Notes under the pieces: model-generated
The model's database searches: none
Told to the model about the DNA's origin: nothing
What the model saw: the letters and a program-made list of their open reading frames with translations, nothing else
Assembly: GCA_048772705.1 (NCBI GenBank)
Contig: JBLWGC010000036.1
Coordinates: 270,175 to 334,174, forward strand
Length of the DNA stretch: 64,000 bases
From: Leidyana gryllorum EB-2025a
Lineage: Eukaryota > Protista > Apicomplexa
Reading direction: 5' to 3'
Made by a program: the position numbers and the translations under genes
Part shown: positions 3,001 through 64,000 of the stretch, in pieces
How positions within the stretch are numbered: the first letter of the stretch is position 1
Layout: every line of letters starts with the position of its first letter

Positions 3001-6000
3001 CCTCAGGACATAGTCTCCGGAAGGGAAATCGGGGATTGTGGAATGTACAGTCAGTAACATTGGAGTCCACAACAAACTAACATCCAGTTCCCGAAGATTC
3101 AGCCGACTTCGGCCGCCTTCGTTCCAGTCCACATCCAGCCCTCCCGGGCCGATACTCAAGCGGTTGTATTGGCTCGTCAGAAGCGTTTCATACTGTCTGC
3201 TCAAGAGACAGCTGACCAGAGACAGAGACGGGTTACTGCTGACGACCATCTTCCATTTGCCCTCAGTGTTGTCGTACACAACAGCAGTTTTGGCGAAACT
3301 GCCATCACTATTGACTTTACAGTATACAGGTTTGTCTTCTATCATCAATCGAGTCCTGCCGTAGAGTGCGAGGATCGAAGTATCCTCACAGCTCAAACTT
3401 AAGCGGAAAGCGGGATCTTCACATTCCTCGCGAGCAATGACGGCGAAGCTTGGAATGCTCTCCAGGCCTTCGGAGGTGGCCACAAACCACCCACTGTTGG
3501 TCGGACAGGGGCCGCTTACGTCTCCTTTGGGGTGTTTGAGCAGAGGTTGGCTGAGATCAGTTGGACTCAAAGTGAAGGCAATCTTGTCGCTGACAGCCAA
3601 TGGGCCCGCCACTCCTCCTATCTGCACGCTCCCAACAATCTTCCACTCCATCATTCTCGAATCGTACAGAAGTTTTCGGACGCCTTTGCAGCCGCGGTGC
3701 TCATACACCGGACGGAAGCTTTCGATCTCCCCATTCAGATGATACGTTCCTAATATTCCCATTTCATCCTTCCCTGCTGCCGCATCTGTGATGACAACTT
3801 CAACGACACGTGGTACACTATAGTCACCGCGGCCCGAGCGTAAGGTGAGGGGCATCGAATTCTTCACTCGAATCGACAGCTCCAACAGAACCTCGCAGCT
3901 TTCACTGCAGCATCCATATTGGTGGGCCAACAGCAAATCTACTGGCATCCCGCGCTGACACACGGGGCACAACTCGTAATTGCTCGGCAACAGCTGGACG
4001 ACCAAACTGGCAAAGTTGCTGTCGCGGAACAGCTGTCCACAGGTGACATGTTTGAGCGGCAGTGAACTCAGCGCCCGAGTGCCCAGATGCTCCTGGAAGA
4101 ACATTAGCGATGAGTCTGTGGGCAGATTGTCGACATCCATCATGGCGGCTTCGAGGTTCTCTTGCAGTAAGTGTAGTTTGGATTTGACCCCTTCTTCGCC
4201 CCGCAGAACAGCTTCACTCTCGTGCAGCAGACAGGCGACGATATCTCTCCTCAGACTGAAGATATCCTTCATGGTGCGTTTCAAAGCGAGCTGAATCACC
4301 GAGCTATACATATGCAGCTCGTCACTACTTTTGACCATCAGAGTCCCCAGATACATGGAGGACATGTCCGCGGGGTTATATCCTTTCAGAAAGAGGAGGA
4401 TTGTGCCTTCTTCGACGGCACAGCACGTAGTCGGGAGGAAGTCATCCGCTTCTTCGTCCTTCAAAAGCTCCATCGCGTGCTGTAAGCTTTCATTTGGGGT
4501 TGCATTGGCAAAGTACCTAACGTAGCCGCAGATATTGACAAAATAGGAACTCAGAATGCTGCCGGGCTTCTTGACGCCGATCAGGAATATAGCATTACAA
4601 ACCGCTCCCTTTTGTGTATTCCTGGTGGTCGGCATGATGGTTACATAACTATCCACCAAGTCCAACGGCTGCATTGGCTGCAGACCGCATGTCCAGAGCC
4701 TCTGACCACTGGCGTCCGTAACTGGTTTGGTTTGGAGAGCGTACAGTGCCGACTCTTCCAGGGCATCGCCATGGAGCAACGATAAGAGGAGCGCGAGGTC
4801 CGCTACTTCCGTCTTGCTGCGACACGCCACGTGGAATGTGATGGGCAAAGTCTGCATTTTGAGCACTGCGAGTTCCTCCGTACTGAACATCTCTCCCAGA
4901 CCGCCGTTGGACAACCATTGGTGTCCAGTATTCAGGAAGGCTAAAACTGGATCAAAGTCGTCACTCAGGCGCACTTCGCCGGCCGCCAGACTTTGCCATC
5001 CACGCCCGGCTTTCCCATTCTGCGCAGAGGGAGGAGAGTCGGCGGCATCCCCTCTTGTAGAAGCGCCTCGTTTGCTTCTCAACTTGGGGCGACGAATTAT
5101 GCTTCTCAGAGCGTCGCAGTTGATTCCATTCATCATTTGAACGTCGTCAACCAGAAAGATATCGATAGCTCGGTCGTCTTGGCCGGCAAAGTTCCCACTC
5201 AACGAGGCTGGAGGGCACCCGTGAAGTCGTTCTCCGCCTTTGAACCGATCGGCAAAGTGCCCTTGGGATTTGTAGTGGGTTGTGAAACTAACAGTCTCCA
5301 TCAGTGTCTGCGGGGGAGGAACTCCCGGATGAGGATTCTGCAAAGGTGTCCATTCCATTGCGAGCTTTGCAGACTCAGCCCCCGGTGCAGGGTCGCGTCG
5401 CTGAACCACAGTGCTCGGTAGAAGCCGTGGCTTCCGTTTACCACTCTTCGCTCGCCTCTTCGACAGCTCCTCTTCGTAGTCACTCGTTCCCGAGCTCACA
5501 CCGCTCAGGTTGTCATCAAACAATTCACATATGCGTTTCACTGACGGTGCATTGCGATCCTTAAAGAAAGAAGTCCATTTTGCATTGCCTCGGGTCTGAT
5601 AAGATTGTGGAGAACCGTCGTCGGACCTGTCGTCCCCGCTTAGCTCGTGGATGTCTTCCAAGTCGTCGCTGGGAATGAACAAAGGCTCCTCATCTTCTAC
5701 CAAACCCTCACATTCACAGACGTCCAGTCCCTCAGACTCGAACCGTTCTAACATCTGACTGCGGAATTCTCGACAACTGCGCTTTCTGCTCTCATCGATC
5801 ATAACCGGCGGGAAACTGCTCTCCTTCCAGGTGACCACCCCCTCGTCGAACGTGGGGAAGTTTAAACTCCAGTCATAGTTCCGACCATCAGATTTCTGAA
5901 AGACCTCATTGATCTCGCAACTCGGCCTCGCGACGTCGATACCCTCATTGAACATTACCGCTCCCAATGCAGCGTACTCCATTGGCGCGTCATCGTCACC

Positions 6001-9000
6001 ACTCCCGGCCGTCTCGCTCTCGAGTGCCGGAGCCGCCTTGGATTTGGCCCCCGGTTTCCCGTGACCCGAAGTGTCCACCACTTCCGGAAGCGAGAAGAAG
6101 AGGGGCAGTACTCGCAGAGTTTGATCCAAATCCTGCCCAGCACGGAGCATCGCGACCACTCGGGCTACGTGATCGACTTTGGTGTAGGTGAAGTGTAATG
6201 GAACAAACCCGGCATTGAAGGTCCAGTAGTTGCACGGCACCTGTCCAGTATTCAGGAGCAAAAGTTCGTCACTCATTTGATCCTCGTCTATCCCAAATCC
6301 AAATATAAATGATCGTCCTTCCACCGATGTGGTGTTGTGGATTGTACTCGTGGCCGACCCCGAGAGCCCATCAAACTGCAGTAGAGAGGCGTCAGTCCGT
6401 GGATCTTCATTGGTCCCCGTCCTAACACCCGAGCCGCCTGCGTTCTCTCGGGCGGGAGCCCATTCTGCCGGCTGACTCTCTCCCGAGGCAGCCTCACCTT
6501 TCGCTATCAGCGTCTCCACATACTGTCGGGTTTGCGGGAGGGGATAGAGACCCGGCACGTGCTCGGTGGAGACAGACCAGGTTCCAGTCAGATAGTCTTT
6601 GACGAAACACACAATGCGGTGGGCACCATTCGACCCTCCAACCGGCACAGCAGCCAGAATGGAGTTCAGGAAGAAACGCGAACGCGCTTCCGGCAGGGCA
6701 CCTTTGGCCGGACTGCCGGCCACACCTTTGAACAGTCCACCAGCTGACTCTTCCTTCTCAAAGTCTTCCTCCTCTTCCATCAGTTCGCCGAGATCCAGGT
6801 ACTCCGGAACAGTCAGAGAGCCCCGTGACTCGCTCAGAGAAGCTGTGCTGCAAAACTCGTCCACTCTCGAGTGCAGCACATTGATACTCATTTCCACAGG
6901 CAGTGAGATTAGCGTAGTCTGAGCAGTCACTGAGCATTCCTCCCCATTGGGCATCAGAAAATTGCTCAGAGACCGCTCCGAGCAGTAAGCGGAGATGAGA
7001 TTCTCAAGCGATACGTTGGCATTAGGGTCATAATGCAGCTGAAGTTGCTCTATGGTCCGCGCGTTCACGTAACCCTTTGAGGCAAAGTCCACACCTTCAC
7101 TCGCAGATTGCGATTTCGCCTGAGCACCACCACCGCCCTTGCCGCCTGACGAGTTGTTTTGGGGCACCACCAAAGTTGCCTCATCCAAACACAGGAAGGT
7201 TTGGACGAGGTTTCGACATGAATCGGCCGCGCTCTTCGCTTCACCATCGACCAAAGAGGGGTAACAGGCCTCGGTGGCAGCAATCAGTGTCGGTCGCAGC
7301 GCTTGTAGAAGAGTGTAGACATCAAATACCTCCAAAGCAGAGTGCAAGCGGCACAGCTCGGTTGTTGCTTTGACTATCCGGAATATCCACTTTCGAGGAA
7401 TTCGCCGAGTGGGCTCCTTCTGGGAAGCCCGCATGGCACCCTTAACGGTGGCCACCAACAGCACCGCCAGCGTCGGTAAACTCAGATTCTCGCGACCTTC
7501 CAGAGTGATACGACTCGGCAGATTCAACCTCATCCGAACGCCGTTCGCCTCAGGGTCGCTGGGGTCGGGGGCGGTGTTCCGCTCACTATTGTTCTGGGCT
7601 AAAGTCTTTGGATTCAGACCGAATGCCTTCATAGTCTCGTGTGACACCGAAACAGTCTCCTCTGCAGCTTGCTGATTGCGTGTCTCCTTGAGCCAGGTAC
7701 GCACTGCCTTGACCACTGCGCGATGGTGTATGTAGTGCAGGAAGCTGAGCACCATCTCCACACTCGGTGTGAAGAGAGTGCCTTGGATCAGAGGTTCCAA
7801 GGCCTGCCAAGCCTCGCTTGTGGATCCCAAGCAGCCTATTTCGAACCACGGAAGGAGATTGCGAAGTTGGCGGACAAGTGGTTTGTCCGACCGCAGGGCA
7901 TCCTCGCGGGCGAAACGGCCTTTCCAGATGTCTCCGGCTTGTTTTACGGGATGCTCCAGGCTCAGAACAGTTCCTCTTTGCTCAAAAGCCATGCGGAAGC
8001 GCTGACTCTTTCGGACACAGTGCGGTCGCACAGTCGCCGTGATGGTGGAGATCATTTTGTTCTGATCACCGTGTCTGGGAACCACTGATTCGTAATTCCA
8101 ACTCAAGGGACTCCAATGATTGACCCGTTTCGCGAGTTCATCGAGTTCTTCCTCGTTCAGTAAAGCTTCGGTATCCCTCTTCTTGGACCTATTCGCGGCA
8201 CCCATTTTCCGACGGGCAAAATCGCCAGGTACCAAGCATCGCTGTACCGGTTCAATGAATCGTGAGGCAAGCCGAATGCGCAGAACGGCTTGCGCGGGTT
8301 TGCCTCCAACGAAGGTTTTGCCAGTCTTGCTATTGATCTCAGTTGACAAAACTTGTGCTTTAGTGAGCCTTGGAATGTCTATGACGGGATTGCTGTTGCT
8401 TATTGCTTGAATACCCCAAACGCTGGCGCTATGGTCGTTAATGTTGCGCCAATTGAGTAACGTGACCTCGTAGAACACCTGTGGGACACTCCACATGTAG
8501 CTTTCGAACGTAGGGGAGTTACTATTGGGTGGCCGCGCGGGTTTGTGAAACTCGAGTCGCACAGCGACGCTATCGGCCATGGGCGGCGGCGGATTCTTCA
8601 CTCGGATTCCCCGTTTGCGATGCCTGAGAGTCTCTGATGATCCACCACCGGCCCCACCTGGAGCCGGATTGATAGCCGCTGTAACCTTAAGATGCAAACC
8701 TCCGATTGTACGTCTTTTTCCCTCAGCAGTAGCTGTACGTTTAGATAGCAGAGTGGGCACATCAAGTGACACCACATCAGCGTCCACCCAGCCTGTAGCA
8801 TCTTGGCAGCAAAGGTGGTTTACGAAAAACTCGCTTCCGGTTTGCTTCATGAACGAGTGCACAGTTATATCGAGTTGCTCTTTCAGAGTTCTACCGTCAG
8901 GTGTAGATAGTTTGTTGGCCGGGGTTTCGGGTCGTAGCCGAGTCCACGCCACTCCTCTGGCGCTCAACGCCGTTCGTCCGTCTCCCGAGCGCTTGTACAG

Positions 9001-9327
9001 TTGAAAGGTGCCTTCTTTGGCGTGGTCATTAACGGGACCGAAAGAAACTCCCATGTCATCCAATTCTTCAATCAAGCGTTGTAGCCGGACTCTGGTGCCC
9101 CATCCTTGCGCGAGTGCCGTCAAGCGAGCGATTTGAATCTTGTGTGCGAATGCTCCGTCAGTATGGGGCCACCACACACCGCCTTCCGAGTACGGAACGG
9201 GGACCCTGACAACGGGCATAAACCAACATGCTGAACGGAATGGACTGTGACAGTCAACAATCTGATCAACTATCTCGTATTCGCTGCAGGTATACTCGCT
9301 CTCAACGTCTTCGGCCGATGTGGTCAT
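1..9327 (-). CDS. Giant (>3,070 aa) multidomain hypothetical protein, 3' end outside window; degenerate USP-like region, UBZ-like zinc finger, three beta-rich internal repeats, coiled coil with poly-Lys NLS-like tract
   Basis: The 2743-aa ORF 9327-1096 ends at a GT donor (GG|GTAAG). Introns 1099-1054 (46 nt) and 877-829 (49 nt) keep the frame open through exons 1053-878 and 828-1, with no stop before base 1. Domain calls are motif resemblance only. Confidence 0.85.
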
Positions 9328-45268: not shown

Positions 45269-46502
45269 ATGTCAAGTGACGAACAAGTTCAGCAGCCCCC
45301 CCAAGACGCTATTGGGACCAACTGCGATGAAGTGGTCGAGACTTTTGAGGGCTTGAACCTCTGCGAGGGCCTGGTCCGTGGCATCTACGCCTACGGTTTC
45401 GAGAAGCCTTCTGCCATTCAGCAGAGGGGAATCAAGCCCATCCTGGAGGGTCACGACACCATCGGTCAGGCTCAGTCCGGTACTGGAAAGACTGCCACTT
45501 TCGCCATCGCCGCGATCCAGAAAGTGAACCTCAAGTTGTTCCAATGCCAAGCCCTTATCCTGGCGCCCACTCGTGAGTTGGCCCAGCAGATCCAGAAGGT
45601 CGTGCTCGCCCTCGGTAACTACCTCCGCATCCGCTGTCACGCCTGCGTCGGTGGTACCGATGTTCGCGAGGACGTCCACAAGCTCAAGGACGGAGTCCAC
45701 ATCGTCGTCGGTACCCCCGGCCGTGTGCTCGACATGGTTGTCAACCGCCAGTGCCTGTCCCTGAACAGCCTCAAGCTCTTCGTCCTCGACGAGGCCGATG
45801 AGATGCTTAGCCGTGGTTTCAAGAGCCAAATCCACGATGTCTTCCAGCACCTGCCCAACGACATCCAAGTTGCCCTCTTCTCCGCCACCATGCCCAATGA
45901 AATTCTCGAACTCACTCAGCGCTTCATGCGGAAACCTCGTATCATTCTGGTTAAGAAGGACGAGCTCACCCTCGAGGGTATCAAACAATTTTTCGTCCTG
46001 CTTGAGCACGAAGAGGAGAAGTACCAGACCCTCGCTGACCTTTACGAGACCATCGAAATCCAAGCCTGTATCATCTACGTCAACTCCCGTAGAAAGGTCG
46101 AGGAACTCGCTCAGCGCATGGTTGATGACTCTCACACTGTCTCTCGCATGGTAAGCCACATCAATTTTAGACTCCACCCGTCATATCTCTCCCCAACAGC
46201 ACGGTGAAATGCCCCAGAGCGAGCGTGAAGTGATCATGAAGGAGTTCCGTAGCGGTTCCAGTCGTGTCCTCATCACCACTGATCTGCTGGCCCGTGGAAT
46301 TGATGTCCAACAAGTCTCTCTGGTCGTCAATTACGACCTCCCAGGCTCTGTTGAAAACTACATCCACCGTATCGGCCGCAGTGGTCGTTTCGGTCGTAAG
46401 GGTGTGGCCATCAACTTTGTCACTCAGCACGACTACGACCAGCTTAAGTACATCGAGACTTACTACAACACTCAGATCGATCCCCTCCCCTCCGAGCTTT
46501 GA
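45269..46502 (+). CDS. eIF4A: Translation initiation factor eIF4A
   Basis: Motifs [48 protein letters not shown] and [15 protein letters not shown]. One intron at 46151-46199 and strong C-ending codon bias. Confidence 0.97.
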
Positions 46503-46572: not shown

Positions 46573-47545
46573 ATGTCTAGCCAGGCTCCAGTGCCCTCTC
46601 GTATGTACGGTGCTCCCTGTAGTAGACCGTAGATCATGCCCTTCCTCCCCCATGCAGGATGCTCCAGGCCTTCAAGGGCCGAAAGAAGGGAGCACAACAG
46701 GGACACTCACTCCTCAAGAAGAAGTCCGATGCTCTCACAGCCCGCTTCCGCGGGATGCTCAAAGAGATTGTGGACGTAAGCTCGGCCTCACCGCCGCCTG
46801 CCAATGCCTTTCAGACTAAGGGCGAGATGGGAGAGGAGATGAAAGAAGCCAGCTACTCCCTGGCTAAGGTCGCTTACGTGACGGATCAGGGTAGCAATTA
46901 CCAGAGCCAGATCATGCAAGCGGTCAAACGCCCTGCTGTCACATTGAAGTTGAGCACTGAGAATGTTGCCGGCGTTCGGCTCCCCGTCTTCCAGATGAAC
47001 ATTGACAACTCTGCTGACAGTGGGTGCCGCACACACGTTTCCTGTAATATTGCTGAGCCGTCAGTTCTGGGTAACATGGGTATCGCGCGCGGCCATCAAG
47101 TTCTGCAAAGTGCCCGGGATCGGTTCCTGCGCTCTCTAACATTGTTGGTGCGACTGGCGTCTATCCAAACTGCCTTCTTCACATTGGACGCGGAAATCAA
47201 GATGACTAATCGACGTGTGAATGCGCTGGACAATGTAAGGGTGCCGCTTGTCGATATAACAACGACTGCCACTCCAGGTTGTCATCCCGACCCTGGAGCA
47301 TAACATCAACTACATTTCGCGCGAACTCGACGAACAAGAACGCGAGGAGTTCTTCAGGTGAGCTGCTGAGCGAGCTGATGGGTTCCGACGTATGTCCTGA
47401 TAGGCTGAAGAAGATTCAGGGTAAGAAAAAGGCCAAAGCGGAGGCCGAAGAAGCCGAGAGGAAAACCTATGCAAAACGCTACGACGACGACCAGAATCAC
47501 TCTTCCACGATATTCGGGCAGAAGGACGCAGATATCATTTTCTGA
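46573..47545 (+). CDS. ATP6V1D: V-type ATPase subunit D
   Basis: Motifs GHSLLKKKSDALTARFR, ENVAGVRLPVF, LASIQTAFFTLD, TNRRVNALDN and ELDEQEREEFFRLKKIQ. Five introns. Confidence 0.96.
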
Positions 47546-51227: not shown

Positions 51228-52288
51228 TTCCAATGATCACAACAATGCCTCCAGATATTGGATGGATGTACAAATTGAATGTGAAGGAGTGACGTTGAAC
51301 AACTTCGTCCCCTCATACTGTTACCACAAATGTTGGACGCACACGACTATGAATGCTCTCAGCTGCCGACTGGCCACTTAGTTCTGACTTCGGGGTGTCG
51401 GCACAAGTAGGTGACCGGCCGTCTTTGGCAAACTGCCTCACCGAGTCTCACTCGCGTTGCTTTGTGCATCGGGGAGACGCTTGCGGGCGGGTCTGCTCCT
51501 GACGCCAGAAGCGCGTCCTTTCAGACTGCTTTCGGAAACCGCTGTCGCGACTCCTCCGTCTCCCTGGCGGCCTAAAACTCGATCTCTCGTCGGCCGACGG
51601 ACTCCAGCACAACGCGAATGATCTGATTGTGCGGGTTGACGGTGTCCTGCAGCGGAGTTCGGAAAGCGCAATCGAGGGGGGTCGGATGAAGTTAAGCATA
51701 TCTACAATATGTCGACACCGTCACGCCCTTCAGAGTCGGTAGAGGCTGACACACGCCACTCTCATTGTATTGGAACCATCATCGAACTGAGGACCGCGCA
51801 CCCTCCGTGCGCCTGCCTGCTCGACCAGGTAGCCAAAGCTGTAATGTCCCGCCGGGATCAGTGGTGCTCGGTATATGCAAAAATACGACAAACCCTGTGG
51901 TCCGCGAATGGCTTTCGGACGCGGAATGGAACGCTATTAGCAGACGACACTGAGAGTCCGCCTGTAAGTCGTGTAGTAAGCACAGAGATCGAGAATAGAC
52001 ATCAAGTGCCGTACTCAATGCTTTGAGGTCTCGAGCCTCGTCAACACCATACTATAAGGCACTTTATTTTTTCCTTCAGCAAACACTTACATCACTGTAG
52101 TGTGGACCTCACAGCTGCTGACATTCGACTGCTTAGTGCTCCCGATCCGGAAGCCTTACTTCGTGTTCATCTGCACAAGATTTGACTACACGTGCAGTAG
52201 TGGTCGTATTTTTATCTAACCGCAGAGCTCACCGAGACTGATTTTCACTCTGAAGTGATAAGCAAAGAAAGCCGTTGACCGGCGAACT

Positions 52289-54337
52289 TCAAGAAGTTTG
52301 TTTCCATTTTGACCACAGGTGACTCGCACAATGTAAAAGCCCCGCAGGCAGTAATCTGGAAGTTCTGGATTTCTTCTCCCTTCGCGGGAACACCTCTTCG
52401 TACAGCGACGCGGGACAGACAGCCGGTAACTTTAACGGAAGATCAAAATACTCCAATTCTCTGTAGCGCTGAGTCAACAACGCACGCCCGAACCACCAAT
52501 CGCCTTTGCAAAAATAGGCGATGAAGTCGAACACTCCGCCGACGGAGGTCTGAGCCTCTCGCAATGTCCCTTCCAACATTTCAGCGTACCACTGAGTGAC
52601 AAAGGCCTTTGGAAGGCCGAAGTAATGAGTGTTTGAGGGAAGTGTTGACTCAGCGTGGACACTTCTTTCTCGCAGCTCTGTCCATTGTTCTGGATGGTCG
52701 GCAGTCTGAGCCCTCAGACACAGACCGATCTCTTCAGCAGAACACCCGATGTATTTCAGCACAGCCTCGAGAGTGGCATCGGTATAGAGTCCCGAAACGA
52801 GTTCCAATTGGACCTTAGGCCACGGATAGTGCAAAAGGGCTGCAGCTTGGAGACCGAAACGGACCCGAACGCCTCTCCGTCGCCAAATGGAGTGCCCAAC
52901 CAAAAACCAGTCAGTCAACTTCGCGATGTTCGACGGCACTCCGGTGACACCGACATATTGAATTTGACACCTTTCAATCAAACGTCGCATCGCTTCCGGT
53001 GAGGCATCCCGTTGGGTGTGAAGGCATAGCACCCGGACACAGTCGGGGGGCCAATGGGCGGGGGTCGCGCTCTCACACAGTCCTTCAACGAGCGCCCATC
53101 CCTCCAGAGGTAATTCGATACGCTTCAGATTCTGAAGGGGCAGAGCTTCGAGTACGCTTTCAGTCAGAGTCGGAGTGGAGTTGTTGTTGACATAGAGAAC
53201 CCGTGTCACCTCTGACCACTCCACTGGATGTTTAATGCCGGTTGCGCTCAGATAAAGTGTATTGTCACTCATCGATCCAAAGTACGGAGGAGGGTACACA
53301 GCTGGAGGTTCGGTCAGTGGGAGCGCGCTCCACCGGAAAGGGGGTGAATCCAGATCCTTTGTTCGGGCCAACCGAAACCATCCGAGGTTCGAGTAGACGC
53401 GCCGCAGCACAGTGCCATCTTCTTGAGTCTCGTTCACAAGCCGTTGTGAATATAGTTTGGTCACGAACGGCTCATTCCGCAGGAAAGTGCGACACAGCGG
53501 ATGCATATGGCGCTCCCGATCGCTCCATTCTCGTCTGAGGTACTCCCAGAGCCTCTGTGACCCTCTGAATGAAAAGTAAGTTAATGCTTCCAGGAAGCCT
53601 CACCTCGCGCACTTTGGCCACGTGTGTGTGAATCCGATTCGGAACTCCACTGGATCGCTCGCCCAATCCTGCGCCTCGGGTAAATGTTGCACAAGACACG
53701 GCGATGTCTGCCATCCCCCGTTTGCCACAGAGGCTGCGGTGTCGTTAATTTTGAAGACCCAATGCCTGAAGTGTGGCTTTGTCACCGACACAATCAGGTC
53801 GTTGCCGCCATCACCGACAGCCCTATAGAGCTCCACCGCCAAATCGTGGCGAATGAAAGGAAGTTGATTTCTTGTGACGACTAAACATTCCAACTCCGGA
53901 GCATCGATAAGCAGCGACCCTTCAGACAGGTGTGAGTCTGAGATGTCCAAGAACTTCAGGTTGGGGAAACTGAAAGTGTGGGTCTGCCACGACCCCCGAC
54001 TTTCGAAAACGGTGCCTATGGTCGCTTCCGTTAATCTCGGCAATCCCCATTGGGACATCTTTTGTAGCAGATCAGTGAATATCAGGCGTTTGAATGTGTG
54101 TCCTGTCCAGCTCAAGGACTCCAGGTGACGGCACGATCGGCAAAGCCACGCTTCAAACCAAGAGGCGCGCTGAACCCAGGCCCACTGTGAGGCTGCGAGA
54201 GAAAGGCGTTGAGAAACCAATAATGAGTTCTCAGAGTGAAGAATACTGTGTAGCTGTTTCGAGATTCCTGCCGCTTTTGTCAGCTCCCACAGCGGTAAGA
54301 AAGCCAGAATTTGGGTCCAGATGTCGTCGTTCAGCAT
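52289..54337 (-). CDS. F-box/LRR-like protein, copy 1 (669 aa; intron 53565-53603)
   Basis: N-terminal F-box LNDDIWTQILAFLPLWELTKAAGISKQL and LRR strands (LESLSW, LPRLTEATI, FPNLKFLDIS, APELECLVV, LQNLKRIEL). The 39-nt GTGAGG..TTCAG intron removes the in-frame TGA and fuses the 245-aa and 405-aa ORFs. Confidence 0.88.
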
Positions 54338-54406
54338 TGGTCAACACAGAGACCGGCAATGTTGTCTGCACACACTCGTGTGCGATCTAGAGCACCAGCC
54401 CAAGCA

Positions 54407-54874
54407 ATGTTGTGTAGTGATGCCGGAGGGGATGTCGTCAGGATTTCCCGACGTAAACTTGGCAACGAGCACTTTACTAAGCGAGACATGGAGCACAGAG
54501 ATGCTGACCGCGTCGCGCTCGATATATGCAAAGATACGACAAACCCTGTGGTCCACGGCTGACTTTCGGACGCAGATTACAACGCCATGTGCCAGACGAC
54601 ACTGAGAGTCCGCCTGTAAGTCTTGTAGTGAGCACAGAGATTGAGCAGAGCCATCAGGTGCCGTACTCAATGCTTTGAGGTCTCGAGCCTGTCAACACCA
54701 TACTATAAGGCACTTTATTGCCTTTCGGCAAACACTTACATCACTGTAGTGTGGACCTCACAGCTGCTGAAATTCGACTGCTCAGTGCTCCCGATCCGGA
54801 AGTCTTACTTCGTGTTCATCTGCACAACATCTGACTTTACGTGCAGTAGTGGTCATGATTTTGTCCAAACGTAG
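54407..54874 (+). pseudogene. Companion gene relic (in-frame TGA 54560-62; intron 54616-54657)
   Basis: ATG lies 70 nt from the F-box ATG on the opposite strand. The frame continues past the TGA to a GTAAGT donor and a second exon. Confidence 0.45.
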
Positions 54875-54932
54875 AGCTCAGGGACACTGATTTTCACTGG
54901 CTGAAGTAAAGAAAGCCGTTGACCGAGGAATC

Positions 54933-56981
54933 TCAAGAAGGTTGTTTCCATTTTGACCATAGATGACTCGCACAATGTAAAAGCCCCGCAGGCAGTAATC
55001 TGGAAGCTCTGGATTTCTTCTCCCTTCGCGGGAACACCTCTTCGTACAGCGACGCGGGACAGACAGCCGGTAACTTTAACGGAAGATCAAAATACTCCAA
55101 TTCTCTGTAGCGCTGATTCAACAACGCACGCCCGAACCACCAATCGTCTGTGCAAAAACGGGCGATGCGGTCGAACACTCCGCCGACGGAGGTCTGAGCC
55201 TCTCGCAATGTCCCTTCCAACATTTCAGCGTACCACTGAGTGACAAAGGCCTTTGGAACGCTGTAGTAATGAGTGTTTGATGGAAGTGTTGACTCAGCGT
55301 GGACACTTCTTTCTCGCAGCTTTGTCCATTGTTCTGGATGGTCGGTAGTCTGAGCCCTCAGACACAGACCGATCTCTTCAGCAGAACACCCGATGTATTT
55401 CAGCACAGCCTCGAGAGTGGCATCGGTATAGAGTCCCGAAACGAGTTCCAATTGGACCTTAGGCCACGGATAGTGCAAAAGGGCTGCAGCTTGGAGACCG
55501 AAACGGACCCGAACGCCTCTCCGTCGCCAAATGGAGTGCCCAACCAAAAACCAGTCAGTCAACTTCGCGATGTTCGACGGCACTCCGGTGACACCGACAT
55601 ATTGAATTTGACACCTTTCAATCAAACGTCGCATCGCTTCCGGTGAGGCATCCCGTTGGGTGTGAAGGCATAGCACCCGGACACAGTCGGGGGGCCAATG
55701 GGCGGGGGTCGCGCTCTCACACAGTCCTTCAACGAGCGCCCATCCCTCCAGAGGTAATTCGATACGCTTCAGATTCTGAAGGGGCAGAGCTTCGAGTACG
55801 CTTTCAGTCAGAGTCGGAGTGGAGTTGTTGTTGACATAGAGAACCCGTGTCACCTCTGACCACTCCACTGGATGTTTAATGCCGGTTGCGCTCAGATAAA
55901 GTGTGTTGTCACTCATCGATCCAAAGTACGGAGGAGGGTACACAGCGGGAGGTTCGGTCAGTGGGAGTGCGCTCCACCGGAGAGGGGGTGAATCCAAATT
56001 CTTTGTTCGGGCCAACCGAAACCATCCGAGGTTCGAGTAGACGCGCCGCAGCACAGTGCCATCTTCTTGAGTCTCGTTCACAAGCCGTTGTGAATATAGT
56101 TTGGTCACGAACGGCTCATTCCGCAGGAAAGTGCGACACAGCGGATGCATATGGCGCTCCCGATCGCTCCATTCTCGTCTGAGGTACTCCCAGAGCCTCT
56201 GTGACCCTCTGAATGAAATGTAAGTCAGCGCTTCCAGGAAGCCTCACCTCGCGCACTTTGGCCACGTGTGTGTGAATCCGATTCGGAACTCCACTGGATC
56301 GCTCGCCCAATCCTGCGCCTCGGGTAAATGTTGCACAAGACACGGCGATGTCTGCCATCCCCCGTTCGCCACAGAGGCTGCGGTGTCGTTAATTTTGAAG
56401 ACCCAATGCCTGAAGTGTGGCTTTGTCACCAACACAATCAGGTCGTTGCGGCCGTCACCCACAGCCCTATAGAGCTCTACCGCCAAATCGTGGCGAATGA
56501 AAGGAAGTTGGTCTCTTTGGACGACCAAACACTCCAACTCCGGAGCATCGATAAGCAGCGACCCTTCAGACAGGTCTGACTCTGAAATGTCCAAAAACTT
56601 CAGGTTGGGGAAACTGAAAGTGTGGGTCTGCCACGACCCCCGACTTTCGAAAACGGTGCCTATGGTCGCTTCCGTTAATCTCGGCAATCCCCATTGGGAC
56701 ATCTTTTGTAGCAGATCAGTGAATATCAGGCGTTTGAATGTGTGTCCTGTCCAGGTCAAGGACTCCAGGTGACGGCACGATCGGTAAAGCCACGCTTCAA
56801 ACCAAGAGGCGCGCTGAACCCAGGCCCACTGTGAGGCTGCGAGAGAAAGGCGTTGAGAAACCAATAATGAGTTCTCAGAGTGAAGAATACTGTGTAGCTG
56901 TTTCGAGATTCCTGCCGCTTTTGTCAGCTCCCATAGCGGTAAGAAAGCCAGAATTTGGGTCCAGATGTCGTCGTTCAGCAT
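54933..56981 (-). CDS. F-box/LRR-like protein, copy 2 (669 aa; intron 56209-56247)
   Basis: Same structure as copy 1; intact. Confidence 0.88.
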
Positions 56982-57050
56982 TGGTCAGCACCGAGACCGG
57001 CAATGTTGTCTGCACACACTCGTGTGCGATCTAGAGCACCAGCCCAAGCA

Positions 57051-57506
57051 ATGTTGTGCAGTGATGCCGGAGGGGATGTCGTCAGGATTTCCCGACGTAA
57101 ACTTGACAACGAGCACTTTACGAAGCGAGACATGGGGCAAGAGATGCTGACCGCGTCGCGCTCGATATATGCAAAGATACCACCAACCCTGTGGTCCGCG
57201 GCTGACTTTCGGACGCAGATCTCAACGCCATGTGCCAGACGACACTGAGAGTCCGCCTGTAAGTCTTGTAGTAGGCACAGAGACTGAGCAGAGCCATCAG
57301 GTGCCGTACTCAATGCTTTGAGGTCTCGAGCCTCGTCAACACCATACTATAAGGCACTTTATTGCCTCTCGGCAAACACTTACATCACTGTAGTGTGGAC
57401 CTCACAGCTGCTGACATTCGACTGCTCCCGATCCGGAAGTCTTACTTCGTGTTCATCTGCACAACATTTGACTACACGTGCAGTAGTGGTCGTATTTTTA
57501 TCTAAC
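57051..57506 (+). pseudogene. Companion gene relic with extra indels
   Basis: Same sequence as the other companions, with TGA at 57203-05, a 1-nt deletion near 57139 and a short deletion near 57425. Confidence 0.45.
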
Positions 57507-57576
57507 CGTAGAGCTCACCGAGACTGATTTTCACTCTGTCTGAAGACAAGCAAAGAAAGCCGTTGACCCGGGAACC

Positions 57577-59625
57577 TCAAGAAGTTTGTTTCCATTTTGA
57601 CCATAGATGACTCGCACAATGTAAAAGCCCCGCAGGCAGTAATCTGGAAGCTCTGGATTTCTTCTCCCTTCGCGGGAACACCTCTTCGTACAGCGACGCG
57701 GGACAGACAGCCGGTAACTTTAACGGAACATCAAAATACTCCAATTCTCTGTAGCGCTGATTCAACAACGCACGCCCGAACCACCAATCGTCTGTGCAAA
57801 AACGGGCGATGCGGTCGAACACTCCGCCGACGGAGGTCTGAGCCTCTCGCAATGTCCCTTCCAACATTTCAGCGTACCACTGACTGACAAAGGCCTTTGG
57901 AACGCTGTAGTAATGAGTGTTTGAGTGAAGACTTGACTCAGCGTGGACACTTCTTGCTCGCAGCTTTGTCCATTGTTCTGGATGGTCGGCAGTCTGACCC
58001 CTCAGACACAGACCGATCTCTTCAGCGGGACACCCGATGTATTTCAGCACAGCCTCGAGAGTGGCATCGGTATAGAGTCCCGAAACGAGTTCCAATTGGA
58101 CCTTAGGCCACGGATAGTGCAAAAGGGCTGCAGCTTGGAGACCGAAACGGACCCGAACGCCTCTCCGTCGCCAAATGGAGTGCCCAACCAAAAACCAGTC
58201 AGTCAACTTCGCGATGTTCGACGGCACTCCGGTGACACCGACATATTGAATTTGACACCTTTCAATCAAACGTCGCATCGCTTCCGGTGAGGCATCCCGT
58301 TGGGTGTGAAGGCATAGCACCCGGACACAGTCGGGGGGCCAATGGGCGGGGGTCGCGCTCTCACACAGTCCTTCAACGAGCGCCCATCCCTCCAGAGGTA
58401 ATTCGATACGCTTCAGATTCTGAAGGGGCAGAGCTTCGAGTACGCTTTCACTCAGAGTCGGAGTGGAGTTGTTGCTGACATAGAGAACCCGTGTCACCTC
58501 TGACCACTCCACTGGATGTTTAATGCCGGTTGCGCTCAGATAAAGTGTGTTGTCACTCGTCAATCCAAAGTACGGAGGAGGGTACACAGCGGGAGGTTCG
58601 GTCAGTGGGAGTGCGCTCCACCGGAGAGGGGGTGAATCCAGATCCTTTGTTCGGGCCAACCGAAACCATCCGAGGTTCGAGTAGACGCGCCGCAGCACAG
58701 TGCCATCTTCTTGAGTCTCGTTCACAAGCCGTTGTGGATATATATCTGTCACGAACGGCTCAGTCCGCAGGAAAGTGCGACACAGCGGATGCATATGGCG
58801 CTCCCGATCGCTCCATTCTCGTCTGAGGTACTCCCACAGCCTCTGTGACCCTCTGAATGAAATGTAAGTCAGTGCTTCCAGGAAGCCTCACCTCGCGCAC
58901 TTTGGCCACGTGTGTGTGAATCCGATTCGGAACTCCACTGGATCGCTCGCCCAATCCTGCGCCTCGGGTAAATATTGCACCAGACACGGCGATGTCTGCC
59001 ATCCCCCGTTCGCCACAGAGGCTGCGGTGTCGTTAATTTTGAAGACCCAATGCCTGAAGTGTGGCCTTGTCACCGACACAATCAGGTCGTTGCGGCCGTC
59101 ACCCACAGCCCTATGGAGCTCCACCGCCAAATCGTGGCGAATGAAAGGAAGTTGGTTTCTTGTGACGACTAAACATTCCAACTCCGGAGCATCGATAAGC
59201 AGCGACCCTTCAGACAAGTCTGACTCTGAGATGTCCAAAAACTTCAGGTTGGGGAAACTGAAAGTGTGGGTCTGCCACGACCCCCCACGTTCGAAAACGG
59301 TGCCTATGGTCGCTTCCGTTAATCTCGGCAATCCCCATTGGGACATCTTTTGTAGCAGATCAGTGAATATCAGCCGTTTGGATATGAGGCCGCTCCAGGT
59401 CAAGGACTCCAGGTGACGGCAGGATCGGCAAAGCCACGCTTCAAACCAAGAGGCGCGCCGAACCCAGGCCCACTGTGAGGGTGCGAGAGAAAGGCGTTGA
59501 GAAACCAATAATGAGTTCTCAGAGTGAAGAATATTGTGTAGCTGTTTCGAGATTCCTGCCGCTTTTGTCAGCTCCCATAGCGGTAAGAAAGCCAGAATTT
59601 GGGTCCAGATGTCGTCGTTCAGCAT
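57577..59625 (-). CDS. F-box/LRR-like protein, copy 3 (669 aa; intron 58853-58891)
   Basis: Same structure as copy 1; intact. Confidence 0.88.
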
Positions 59626-59694
59626 TGGTCAGCACCGAGACCGGCAAGCTTGTCTGCACACACTCGTGTGCGATCTAGAGCACCAGCCCAAGCA

Positions 59695-60157
59695 ATGTTG
59701 TGCAGTGATGCCGGAGGGGATGTCGTCAGGATTTCCCGACGTAAACTTGGCAACGAGCACTTTACGAAGCGAGACATGGGGCTCAGAGATGCTGACCGCG
59801 TCGCGCTCGATATATGCAAAGATACGACAAACCCTGTGGTCCGCGGCTGACTTTCGGACGCAGATCTTAACACCATGTGCCAGACGACACTGAGAGTCTG
59901 CCTGTAAGTCTTGTAGTAGGCACAGAGACTGAGTAGAGCCATCAAGTGCCGTACGCAATGCTTTGAGGTCTCGAACCTCGTCAACACCATACTATAAGGC
60001 ACTTTATTGCCTTTCAGCAACCACTTACATCACTGTGGTGTGGACCTCACAGCTGCTGACATTCGACTGCTTAGTGCTCCCGATCCGGAAGTCTTACTTC
60101 GTGTTCATCTGCACAACATTTGACTACACGTGCAGTAGTGGTCGTATTTTTATCTAA
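59695..60157 (+). pseudogene. Best-preserved companion gene: ~139 codons, open except for one TGA (59848-50); intron 59904-59946
   Basis: Reads MLCSDAGGDVVRIS...NPVVRG*LSDADLNTMCQTTLRVCL|AVRNALRSRTSSTPYYKALYCLSATTYITVVW...GRIFI*. Confidence 0.5.
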
Positions 60158-60230
60158 CCGTAGAGCTCACCGAGACTGGTTTTCACTCTGTCTGAAGTGA
60201 TAAGCAAAGAAAGCCGTTGACCGGGGAGCC

Positions 60231-62279
60231 TCAAGAAGTTTGTTTCCATTTTGACCACAGATGACTCGCACAATGTAAAAGCCCCGCAGGCAGTAATCTT
60301 GAAGTTCTGGATTTCTTCTCCCTTCGCGAGAACACCTCTTCGTACAGCGACGCGGGACAGACAGCCGGTAAATTTAACGGAAGGTCGAAATACTCCAATT
60401 CTCTGTAGCGCTGATTCAACAAAGCACGCCCGAACCACCAATCGTCTGTGCAAAAAATGGCGATGAAGTCGAACACTCCGCCGACGGAGGTCTGAGCCTC
60501 TCGCAATGTCCCTTCCAACATTTCAGCGTACCACTGACTGACAAAGGCCTTTGGAACGCTGTAGTAATGAGTGTTCGAGGGAAGTGTTGACTCAGCGTGG
60601 ACACTTCTTTCTCGCAGCTCTGTCCATTGTTCTGGATGGTCGGCAGTCTGAGCCCTCAGACACAGACCGATCTCTTCAGCAGAACACCCGATGTATTTCA
60701 GCACAGCCTCGAGAGTGGCATCGGTATAGAGTCCCGAAACGAGTTCCAATTGGACCTTAGGCCACGGATAGTGCAAAAGGGCTGCAGCTTGGAGACCGAA
60801 ACGGACCCGAACGCCTCTCCGTCGCCAAATGGAGTGCCCAACCAAAAACCAGTCAGTCAACTTCGCGATGTTCGACGGCACTCCGGTGACACCGACATAT
60901 TGAATTTGACACCTTTCAATCAAACGTCGCATCGCTTCCGGTGAGGCATCCCGTTGGGTGTGAAGGCATAGCACCCGGACACAGTAGGGGGGCCAATGGG
61001 CGGGGGTCGCGCTCTCACACAGTCCTTCAACGAGCGCCCATCCCTCCAGAGGTAATTCGATACGCTTCAGATTCTGAAGGGGCAGAGCTTCGAGTACGCT
61101 TTCAGTCAGAGTCGGAGTAGAGTTGTTGTTGACATAGAGAACCCGTGTCACCTCTGACCATTCCACTGGATGTTTAATGCCGGTTGCGCTCAGATAAAGT
61201 GTGTTGTCACTCATCGATCCAAAGTACGGAGGAGGGTACACAGCGGGAGGTTCGGTCAGTGGGAGTGCGCTCCACCGGAGAGGGGGTGAATCCAAATTCT
61301 TTGTTCGGGCCAACCGAAACCATCCGAGGTTCGAGTAGACGCGCCGCAGCACAGTGCCATCTTCTTGAGTCTCGTTCACAAGCCGTTGTGAATATAGTTT
61401 GGTCACGAACGGCTCATTCCGCAGGAAAGTGCGACACAGCGGATGCATATGGCGCTCCCGATCGCTCCATTCTCGTCTGAGGTACTCCCAGAGCCTCTGT
61501 GACCCTCTGAATGAAATGTAAGTCAGTGCTTCCAGGAAGCCTCACCTCGCGCACTTTGGCCACGTGTGTGTGAATCCGATTCGGAACTCCACTGGATCGC
61601 TCGCCCAATCCTGCGCCTCGGGTAAATATTGCACCAGACACGGCGATGTCTGCCATCCCCCGTTCGCCACAGAGGCTGCGGTGTCGTCATTTTTGAAGAC
61701 CCAATGCCTGAAGTGTGGCTTTGTCACCGACACAATCAGGTCGTTGCGGCCGTCACCCACAGCCCTATGGAGCTCCACCGCCAAATCGTGGCGAATGAAA
61801 GGAAGTTGGTCTCTTGTGACGACCAAACATTCCAACTCCGGAGCATCGATAAGCAGCGACCCTTCAGAGAGGTCTGACATTGAGATGTCCAAAAACTTCA
61901 GGTTGGGGAAACTGAAAGTGTGGGTCTGCCACGACCCCCGACTTTCGAAAACGGTGCCTATGGTCGCTTCCGTTAATCTCGGCAATCCCCATTGGGACAT
62001 CTTTTGTAGCAGATCAGTGAATATCAGCCGTTTGAATGTGCGTCCTCTCCAGGTCAAGGACTCCAGGTGACGGCACGATCGGCAAAGCCACGCTTCAAAC
62101 CAAGAGGCGCGCTGAACCCAGGCCCACTGTGAGGGTGCGAGAGAAAGGTGTTGAGAAACCAATAATGAGTTCTCAGAGTGAAGAATACTGTGTAGCTGTT
62201 TCGAGATTCCTGCCGCTTTTGTCAGCTCCCATAGCGGTAAGAAAGCCAGAATTTGGGTCCAGATGTCGTCGTTCTGCAT
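60231..62279 (-). CDS. F-box/LRR-like protein, copy 4 (669 aa; intron 61507-61545)
   Basis: Same structure as copy 1. The start MQNDD at 62279 is assigned by homology; the 368-aa ORF call is over-extended upstream. Confidence 0.88.
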
Positions 62280-62348
62280 TGGTAAGCACCGAGACCGGCA
62301 AGCTTGTCTGCACACACTCGTGTGCGACCTGGAGCACCAGCCCAAGCA

Positions 62349-62814
62349 ATGTTGTGCAGTGATGCCGGAGGGGATGTCGTCAGGATTTCCCGACATGAAC
62401 TTGGCAACGAGCACTTTACGAAGCGAGACATGGGGCACAGAGATGCTGACCGCGTCGCGCTCGATATATGCAAAGATACGACAAACCCTGTGGTTCGCGG
62501 CTGACTTTCGGACGCAGATCTCAACGCCATGTGCCAGACGACACTGAGAGTCCGCCTGTAAGTCTAGTAGTAAGCACACAGATTGAGCAGAGCCATCAGG
62601 TGACGTACTTAATGCTTTGAGGTCTCGAGCCTCGGCAACGCCATACAATTAGGCACTTTTTTGCCTTTCAGCAACCACTTACATCACTGTAGTGTGGACC
62701 TCACAGCTGCTGAAATTCGACTGCTCAGTGCTCCCGATCCGGAAGTCTTACTTCGTGTTCATCTGCACAACATCTGACTTTACGTGCAGTAGTGGTCATG
62801 ATTTTGTCCAAACG
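62349..62814 (+). pseudogene. Companion gene relic
   Basis: TGA at 62502-04, and the second exon is more diverged. Confidence 0.4.
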
Positions 62815-62875
62815 TAGAGCTCAGGGACACTGATTTTCACTGGCTGAAGTAAAGAAAGCCGTTGACCGAGGAATC

Positions 62876-64000
62876 TCAAGAAGGTTGTTTCCATTTTGAC
62901 CATAGATGACTCGCACAATGTAAAAGCCCCGCAGGCAGTAATCTGGAAGCTCTGGATTTCTTCTCCCTTCGCGGGAACACCTCTTCGTACAGCGACGCGG
63001 GACAGACAGCCGGTAACTTTAACGGAAGATCAAAATACTCCAATTCTCTGTAGCGCTGATTCAACAACGCACGCCCGAACCACCAATCGTCTGTGCAAAA
63101 ACGGGCGATGCGGTCGAACATTCCGCCGACGGAGGTCTGAGCCTCTCGCAGTGTTCCTTCCAACATTTCAGCGTACCACTGACTGACAAAGGCCTTTGGA
63201 ACGCTGTGGTAATAAGTTTTTGGGGGAAGTGTTGGCTCAGCGTGGACACTTCTTTCTCGCAGCTTTGTCCATTGTTCTGGATGGTCGGTAGTCTGAGCCC
63301 TCAGACACAGACCGATCTCTTCAGCAGAACACCCGATGTATTTCAGCACAGCCTCGAGAGTGGCATCGGTATAGAGTCCCGAAACGAGTTCCAATTGGAC
63401 CTTAGGCCACGGATAGTGCAAAAGGGCTGCAGCTTGGAGACCGAAACGGACCCGAACGCCTCTCCGTCGCCAAATGGAGTGCCCAACAAAAAACCAGTCA
63501 GTCAACTTCGCGATGTTAGACGGCACTCCGGTGACACCGACATATTGAATTTGACACCTTTCAATCAAGCGTCGCATCGCTTCCGGTGAGGCATCCCGTT
63601 GGGTGTGAAGGCATAGCACCCGGACACAGTCGGGGGGCCAACGGGCGGGGGTCGCGCTCTCACACAGTCCTTCAACGAGCGCCCATCCCTCCAGAGGTAA
63701 TTCGATACGCTTCAGATTCTGAAGGGGCACAGCTTCGAGTACGCTTTCAATCAGAGTCGGAGTGGAGTTGTTGTTGACATAGAGAACCCGTGTCACCTCT
63801 GACCACTCCACTGGATGTTTAATGCCGGTTGCGCTCAGATTAAAGTGTGTTGTCACTCATCAATCCAAAGTACGGAGGAGGGTACACAGCGGGAGGTTCG
63901 GTCAGTGGGAGTGCGCTCCACCAGAGAGGGGGTGAATCCAAATCCTTTGTTCGGGCCAACCGAAACCATCCGAGGTTCGAGTAGACGCGCCGCAGCACAG
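62876..64000 (-). pseudogene. F-box/LRR-like protein, copy 5 (partial; 1-nt insertion at 63840-41 shifts the frame)
   Basis: CTCAGATTAAAGTG here versus CTCAGATAAAGTG in copies 1-4. This is either a pseudogene or a sequencing error; the 5' part is outside the window. Confidence 0.6.

Follow-up and report, generated by a model that had tools for sequence, protein, structure and literature searches.

Why should the end of a contig in Leidyana gryllorum EB-2025a, a gregarine apicomplexan, be filled with copies of one gene, and why should these near-identical copies differ in a few short patches? The window considered here is a stretch of 64,000 nucleotides (GenBank assembly GCA_048772705.1, contig JBLWGC010000036.1, positions 270,175 to 334,174 of the forward strand), and the locus in question is a head-to-tail tandem array on its minus strand, at 51866-64000, with four complete copies and one partial copy of a gene for a 669-residue protein that starts with an F-box and continues with repeats resembling leucine-rich repeats (LRR). 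A reading made from the sequence alone had proposed that these copies form a diversifying repertoire of ubiquitin-ligase receptors. According to our analysis, the array probably belongs to a lineage-specific family of Skp1-Cullin-F-box (SCF) substrate receptors with selected recognition patches, which has more than 20 such arrays in the genome.

Selection within the arrays

The question put to the within-array variation (DIVERSIFYING?) was tested by parsimony counts and by codon likelihood. Our 30 full gene models, which come from eight arrays, were built from 24 fetched loci; codon alignments were made exon by exon and then concatenated, with the codon that is split between the exons left out. 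The answer is that there is diversifying selection at discrete sites outside the F-box.

The sequence-only reading had quoted peptide variants of the copies and had described the changes as clustered in short patches, with the F-box almost unchanged. Every variant it quoted is indeed found in the copies, that of copy 5 in the first C-terminal patch among them, and the description is borne out: the changes sit in short patches, the N-terminal ones directly after strands of the LxxLxL type, and residues 1-40, the F-box, are nearly invariant (omega 0.07-0.29, where omega is the ratio of nonsynonymous to synonymous rates, dN/dS). Across the whole gene, pairwise dN/dS among the four window copies is 0.41-0.80 at a dS of 0.03-0.05, and parsimony counts in the eight arrays give a within-array omega of 0.45-0.88 that is strongly heterogeneous. 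Residues 481-500 carry no nonsynonymous change at all and many synonymous ones; the hot spots lie at residues 41-50, 71-82, 191-200, 226-240, 271-285, 536-565 and 585-599, and sites 197 and 198 are altered in six of the eight arrays.

The five patches of the sequence-only reading, which had been marked on the window copies, were then examined in the other seven arrays alone. There, omega is 1.47 in the patches and 0.51 elsewhere (Fisher p = 6e-6), at a synonymous density of 0.52 per codon in the patches and 0.49 elsewhere. The dN of the patches divided by the gene-wide dS is 1.68, with a value above 1 in each of the seven (conditional binomial p = 1.7e-5). That binomial test is significant with the gene-wide synonymous rate and is not significant (p = 0.09) if only the synonymous changes inside the patches are used.

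For the site models we used a Goldman-Yang-type codon likelihood (F3x4) with one omega class per alignment column shared across arrays, so that only divergence within arrays counts. On trees, the one-ratio model M0 gives an omega of 0.70, the likelihood-ratio test (LRT) statistic for M1a against M2a is 126, and 57% of the sites are under strong purifying selection. Because recombination violates the assumption of a single tree, the analysis was repeated without any topology on 13 disjoint independent pairs. The M1a/M2a statistic is then 98.4 (p = 4e-22), the M7/M8 statistic, which the earlier reading had proposed as a check, is 100.7, and that for M8a/M8 is 97.6; about 6% of the sites have an omega of about 5, 56% an omega of 0.17 and 39% an omega of 1. 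Diversification of the patches, as it had been proposed for the window, thus extends to independent arrays.

The sites with a posterior above 0.9 in the tree-based M2a are 48-50, 78, 80, 133, 134, 197, 198, 218, 280, 281, 324, 556, 560, 592 and 595, and the sites selected from the pairs alone largely agree with this set. Nine of the ten such sites in exon 1 follow a predicted strand at a distance of 0-3 residues from its end. They correspond to the 'x' positions of LxxLxLxx, at which LRR proteins usually contact their ligands. In copy 1 (coordinates on the minus strand, as for all features of the array), the LRR-like part with hypervariable positions after successive strands (residues 48-50, 76-82, 133-136, 155-157 and 197-198) is at 53744-54202. 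It is followed by a hypervariable patch at residues 276-284 (53447-53473), in which sites 280 and 281 have posteriors of at least 0.99 for an omega above 1, and by two C-terminal hypervariable patches, one at residues 552-562 (52613-52645), with selected sites 556 and 560, the other at residues 590-599 (52502-52531), with selected sites 592 and 595.

Gene conversion

When informative pairs of sites are compared within arrays, more than 50% of them fail the four-gamete test. A permutation test of the pairwise homoplasy index (PHI) type is significant in three arrays (p = 0.003, 0.001 and 0.018) and in the window subfamily together with its sister (p = 0.005); for the window's own cluster alone it is not significant (p = 0.10). 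The copies are mosaics between which segments have been exchanged by gene conversion, and duplication and conversion together both homogenise the arrays and reshuffle the variable patches. This modifies the idea of tandem copies that diversify: the diversifying patches themselves are confirmed, while the mosaicism produced by conversion had not been considered in the earlier reading.

The F-box and its predicted docking on Skp1

Is the N-terminal part really an F-box? In all of what follows exon 1 (244 residues) and exon 2 (424 residues) were searched and folded separately, the joined protein of 669 residues being used only for checks of frame and length. The F-box of copy 1 occupies residues 1-40 (54218-54337). 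Pfam PF00646 is matched by the window copies at 20.8-21.5 bits, copy 1 having 20.8, against a cut-off of 20.5. It is found in 30 of the 30 paralogues (E up to 0.1, best E 4.6e-5) and also, at 24.2 bits, in a distant subfamily of 23% identity. A genome scan with the same profile gives 23.9-24.6 bits for three of the four complete window copies and 22.1 bits for copy 4. The scores are low, but they are consistent from copy to copy.

The structure predicted for exon 1 by AlphaFold2 from an alignment of 36 paralogue rows (mean predicted local distance difference test score, pLDDT, 76.6; predicted template modelling score, pTM, 0.77) starts with three helices and continues with a series of strands and helices. 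The helices, at residues 4-11, 16-25 and 27-34 with a pLDDT of 75-89, make up the three-helix fold of an F-box. When this model is compared with known structures by VIA-align, the top matches are SKP2 (Z 8.1 over 175 residues, root-mean-square deviation 4.5), FBXL5 (8.0) and FBXL3 (7.7), followed by FBXL17 (7.5), COI1 (7.5) and TIR1 (7.3), and all top alignments begin at residue 1. As a list, these matches with a Z of about 8 agree with the Pfam result; the Foldseek E-values for the same model are weak.

The genome contains the partners that such a protein would need. Skp1 is encoded by a single gene with three exons (92.2 bits), there are at least two cullins (one at 124 bits and a second gene), and Rbx1 is found at 88.5 bits. 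For the prediction of a complex, the three exon pieces of Skp1 were supplied as separate chains together with residues 1-110 of the F-box protein. The predicted complex has an interface score (ipSAE) of 0.73, the best control reaching 0.09; the contact agreement between runs is at least 86% and the pLDDT of the partner at least 70. The mark used for docking is reached by 51 of 78 solved complexes and by 2 of 108 mismatched pairs, although the present job differs from that calibration set. In the model, residues 1-30 and 41-44 of the F-box protein lie on the C-terminal helices of Skp1, which is the canonical interface. As a prediction, this supports a putative binding of the F-box to the organism's own Skp1. 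With the profile matches in all paralogues, the three-helix fold and the predicted docking, the assignment to the F-box family made in the earlier reading holds. The Skp1 gene itself (C230:900022-903165, minus strand) has short introns with GTAAG donors, one of which interrupts the helix that precedes the AANYLDI motif.

It might be argued that a family of this kind is aimed at the host: the proteins would be exported effectors that hijack the host SCF through the conserved Skp1 interface, and the patches would record an arms race with the host. Fast-evolving amplified families of apicomplexans are usually host-interaction genes. Skp1 is highly conserved, and a docking pass with the parasite Skp1 is compatible with the host Skp1 too. 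F-box mimics are, moreover, known effectors of intracellular bacteria (PMC3417536). On the other hand, the genome has a complete SCF core of its own, and the F-box begins at residue 2 behind a methionine that is invariant across the 30 paralogues. There is therefore no room for a signal peptide or leader, which agrees with the earlier reading; this is judged from the position of the F-box and the invariant start, no dedicated predictor having been applied and no further search for export motifs made. In our opinion export to the host is rather unlikely.

The LRR-like part and the C-terminal domain

The sequence-only reading called the remainder of the protein LRR-like, and here its claim has to be divided. 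For residues 44-200, approximately, it is weakly supported. About six irregular repeats match LRR proteins, the exon 1 model reaching a Z of 6-8 to many of these over 110-175 residues. Against sequences of the Protein Data Bank (PDB), the only match of exon 1 is to the LRR of TLR4 (E 0.85). An exhaustive profile search with exon 1 over 1.84 billion representatives returned 25 matches. Eight of them are orphan proteins from Logan assemblies, in which an F-box and repeats are encoded in a single stretch, several having a Pfam F-box of their own; two of the eight also share a weak C-terminal core with exon 2 (hhalign probability 75%). The other matches are genuine LRR proteins that align repeatedly onto residues 120-160, which we treat as a lead only.

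For the C-terminal 424 residues the claim finds no support, as no fold relative was found. Exon 2 has no Pfam domain, no sequence relative in the PDB and no homologue in an index of 5.8 billion proteins. Its model (pLDDT 75.6, pTM 0.78) shows strands 27-32 residues apart that alternate with helices, and a helical C-terminal part. Fold searches with Foldseek, VIA-align and Atlas returned only generic TIM-like beta/alpha structures (Z up to 5.2, template modelling score up to 0.33); the Atlas feature matches, all below 0.9, offer FNIP and LRR as leads only. The domains FTH, FBA, Kelch and FBD were found by Pfam in neither exon. The exon 2 domain may be a degenerate continuation of the solenoid.

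Weighing the evidence for selected receptors

Several points weigh against the reading of the family as SCF receptors with selected patches. The F-box scores of 20.5-24.6 bits lie at or just above the Pfam cut-off; the LRR profiles LRR_4 and LRR_At5g56370, both with 16.3 bits, remain below theirs, which is 27; and the structural Z values of exon 1 are middling, both for the F-box and for the LRR. The docking on Skp1, which was supplied in three pieces, may have passed because of a resemblance to SCF complexes already solved. As to selection, the likelihood code is our own and not codeml or HyPhy, with branch lengths fixed from M0, and the placement of the hot sites on a 'concave face', which had been expected, is a matter of strand register and not of a surface map. 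In the tree-based models 37% of the sites fit an omega of 1, which leaves much of the protein under weak constraint. At the hot sites many codons show differences of 2-3 nucleotides, and arrays on different contigs have a few motifs in common; omega may therefore be inflated by tracts imported from diverged paralogues or by multi-nucleotide mutations.

The last two points lead to a different explanation altogether, which is that no adaptation is involved and that relaxed constraint on redundant duplicates, together with conversion from diverged paralogues, mimics an omega above 1. The gene-wide omega below 1 and the pervasive recombination would both fit, and a neutral hot-spot class alone already beats M1a by 39 log-likelihood units. 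Yet imports or mutational hot spots should raise the synonymous density in the patches, which equals that of the rest; this constancy speaks against imported tracts or multi-nucleotide events as the only cause. A neutral third class that mutates 4.7 times faster is 9.7 log-likelihood units worse than the omega class, and if both parameters are left free, omega is 3.8 and the rate multiplier 1.4, with omega = 1 rejected (LRT 20.3, 1 degree of freedom, p = 6.6e-6). The same sites recur in up to six of the eight independent arrays. It is also difficult to see as redundant a protein that has more than half of its sites under strong purifying selection and about 34 copies with intact frames. We regard an explanation without adaptation as unlikely, and keep the reading of the family as receptors with selected patches.

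The gene model and its predicted intron

The protein of 669 residues depends on the removal of an intron. Unspliced, each copy reads as an open reading frame (ORF) of 245 codons, an in-frame TGA and then 437 in-frame codons (405 residues from the first ATG). The TGA of each copy sits within the GTGAG donor of a predicted 39-nucleotide intron of the GT..AG type, and its removal leaves 669 codons and a stop in each complete copy. In copy 1 the intron predicted from the sequence is in phase 2 (GTGAG...TCAG) and lies at 53565-53603.

The position of this intron is identical in all 30 modelled paralogues, with GTGAG..AG borders. Its length is 38 or 39 nucleotides in 29 of them and 35 in one; by subfamily, it is 39 nucleotides in three and 38 in the remaining ones. 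An intron of 38 nucleotides places the two exons in different frames, so that splicing would be needed for a protein to be made, and these frame-changing introns are the strongest evidence available for the predicted intron.

The array in the window

The sequence-only reading had counted at least five near-identical units of about 2.65 kb, four of them complete and coding for 669 residues. Repeat spacing, unit alignment and intron removal all confirm this. The unit is 2.64-2.65 kb long; the start-to-start spacings of the direct repeats are 2644, 2644, 2654 and 2645 nucleotides, and the aligned units are 95.6-98.3% identical in pairs. The array had been placed from 52289, which is the end of the first gene; the homology of the units begins slightly to the left, at about 51866. 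Tandem Repeats Finder reported none of these repeats because its longest period was 500, and it was the direct-repeat search that found them.

Gene copy 1 is at 52289-54337, with exon 1 at 53604-54337 and exon 2, including the stop, at 52289-53564. Copy 2 is at 54933-56981 (intron 56209-56247), copy 3 at 57577-59625 (intron 58853-58891) and copy 4 at 60231-62279 (intron 61507-61545). Of copy 5 only exon 2 is present, at 62876-64000; the stop codons of the five copies are at 52289, 54933, 57577, 60231 and 62876. The end of the window is also the end of the contig (C36 in our numbering; 334,174 bp), and the assembly therefore breaks off within the array. In copy 5 a single-base insertion breaks the frame right after the ...MSDNTL motif of exon 2, and this copy is either a young pseudogene or the victim of a sequencing error.

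The genes are separated by spacers of 595 nucleotides, and each unit holds only the F-box-family gene. Spacers of the four window copies are 4-8% different from one another. Their variability peaks directly downstream of the preceding stop, with 28 variable columns per 100, and falls to 7 per 100 toward the next ATG; this gradient suggests a constrained promoter or 5' untranslated region upstream of the ATG.

The composition of the unit bears on the idea that these genes are selfish or incompatibility elements, for example of a toxin-antidote or drive type, with an F-box protein that destroys either an essential protein or a partner, as is the case in Caenorhabditis. Hybrid incompatibility is reported to be caused there by young F-box genes, which are also found in toxin-antidote contexts (PMC11573670, PMC12680543), and the family shares with such elements tandem amplification, rapid turnover and the presence of pseudogenes. 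But the spacers contain no partner 'toxin' gene and this gene is the whole unit; the family is, moreover, an old one, in which divergence is deep (identities fall to 23%) while the architecture is conserved. We consider it very unlikely that the copies are elements of this kind.

To the left of the array, a DEAD-box helicase (45269-46204, plus strand) and subunit D of the V-ATPase (46659-47300, plus strand) lie within about 5-6 kb of its boundary. The array is thus embedded in normal gene-dense DNA. Farther away, at 1096-9327 on the minus strand, the window has an ORF of 2743 residues in which no Pfam domain was found at E up to 0.001.

The family in the genome

A six-frame search with exon 2 against the same 15.5 Mb assembly returned 95 matches. 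By our own count from the exon 2 table, close copies that are intact number about 34 (53-100% identity) and distant ones about 40 (20-32%), with about 8 fragments or pseudogenes in addition; the tandem arrays of the family exceed 20 and are spread over more than 15 contigs. The family is thus a large one. Pfam F-box matches in the whole genome number 48.

Many of the arrays are at contig ends with their genes pointing inward, and several contigs stop inside a copy. The label 'subtelomeric' was considered and dropped, as no telomere repeats were found at the ends of the array-bearing contigs. From this absence, and from the contigs that stop within copies, we read the array ends as breakage of the assembly in repeats; true copy numbers are probably above those counted.

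If the assembler struggled here, as the many arrays (that of the window included) that end with their contigs indicate, could the tandem copies be an artefact, namely duplicated or collapsed haplotypes? Within one contig, next to housekeeping genes, there are five regularly spaced and distinct copies, 2-4% apart, and the same organisation is seen for diverged subfamilies on more than 15 contigs. An artefact of this kind is highly improbable.

Two other loci deserve to be mentioned. Contig C186 (92 kb) has a two-copy array at both of its ends (1-8000 and 84000-92302) in inverted relative orientation, and the copies pair across the ends, L006_270 with L007_4393 at 97% and L006_3928 with L007_8068 at 94% amino-acid identity; either chromosome ends have undergone a large inverted duplication or, perhaps, the contig was assembled as a palindrome. 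At C35:236000-245999 a distant subfamily forms a tandem array of single-exon ORFs of 665-674 residues, which match only the C-terminal core of the family and have no Pfam F-box match.

Comparison with known systems

The best structural matches come from the FBXL-type proteins (SKP2, FBXL2, FBXL3, FBXL5 and FBXL17, plant TIR1, COI1 and MAX2, and TgFBXL2 of Toxoplasma), which likewise have an N-terminal F-box directly before strand-helix repeats. The array family differs from them by its approximately six irregular repeats with LRR profiles below the cut-off and by a C-terminal region of about 420 residues that has no relative. It also differs in number, as the FBXL genes are single and conserved whereas this family is amplified to dozens. 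To our knowledge, the F-box proteins of apicomplexans examined to date are few, and they are conserved regulators throughout. In Toxoplasma there are 18 putative ones, of which two are L-type (PMC11166348). Our literature searches on gregarines found no paper on an F-box expansion in this group.

In their mode of evolution the arrays resemble the FBXA, FBXB and FBXC families of nematodes and the expanded F-box families of plants. In these, tandem expansion is lineage-specific, the F-box is conserved and positive selection is concentrated in the part that putatively binds the substrate (PMC8120010, PMC3719486), and we find the same combination here, with tandem expansion and an omega above 1 confined to the part outside the F-box. 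The setting is nevertheless an apicomplexan lineage with a small genome, and the substrate-binding domain is another one, lacking by Pfam the domains FTH, FBA, Kelch and FBD. The likeness is an analogy of mode, not membership of a family: the mode is known from nematodes and plants, while the apicomplexan setting is new and the substrate domain is a different, unassigned one.

Two further comparisons can be made. The S-locus F-box (SLF) arrays of plants are clusters of paralogues thought to cover jointly a set of variable targets. The present arrays are F-box paralogue clusters too, but their domains are unrelated, and nothing here points to a variable target gene linked to them or to a role in mating. 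The amplified variant families of apicomplexans (var, rif, SVSP and others) encode proteins that are secreted or lie at the surface and have signal peptides or transmembrane segments. Their arrays are also shaped by duplication and gene conversion and have hypervariable patches, whereas the F-box family has its F-box at residue 2 and no leader.

Proposed function and implications

How would the receptors work? Residues 1-40 would dock as an F-box on the single Skp1. Residues 44-200 would form a short irregular LRR-like solenoid with a hypervariable residue set after each strand, residues 366-505 a very conserved core of beta/alpha repeats, and the C-terminal part would add two further hypervariable loops. 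Each paralogue would thereby offer a slightly different binding surface, and the protein bound to it would be handed to Cul1-Rbx1 for ubiquitination, and probably degradation, as in SCF complexes elsewhere. New specificities would arise by tandem duplication, by point changes under diversifying selection and by short-tract conversion that shuffles the patches. The targets would presumably be fast-evolving proteins, for instance those of viruses, retroelements or other partners in genetic conflict; the earlier reading had likewise proposed an action within the cell, against viruses or selfish elements.

One can go further and suppose that the more than 70 SCF receptors act as a repertoire resembling innate immunity, in which the patches recognise proteins of the organism's own retrotransposons or of viruses and send them to the proteasome, with conversion as a combinatorial generator of diversity. 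We put this forward as a speculation with a small chance of being right. If it is true, no intracellular defence repertoire of this 'degradation-based' kind would have been described in an apicomplexan before.

By our estimate (about 70-80 genes of about 2.6 kb each), approximately 1% of the 15.5 Mb genome is given to a single F-box family. In nematodes and plants, expanded F-box families are linked to immunity, self/non-self recognition and hybrid incompatibility. The family described here points to an unrecognised layer of genetic conflict in its lineage, and the residues of the hot spots provide a concrete set with which the targets may be found.

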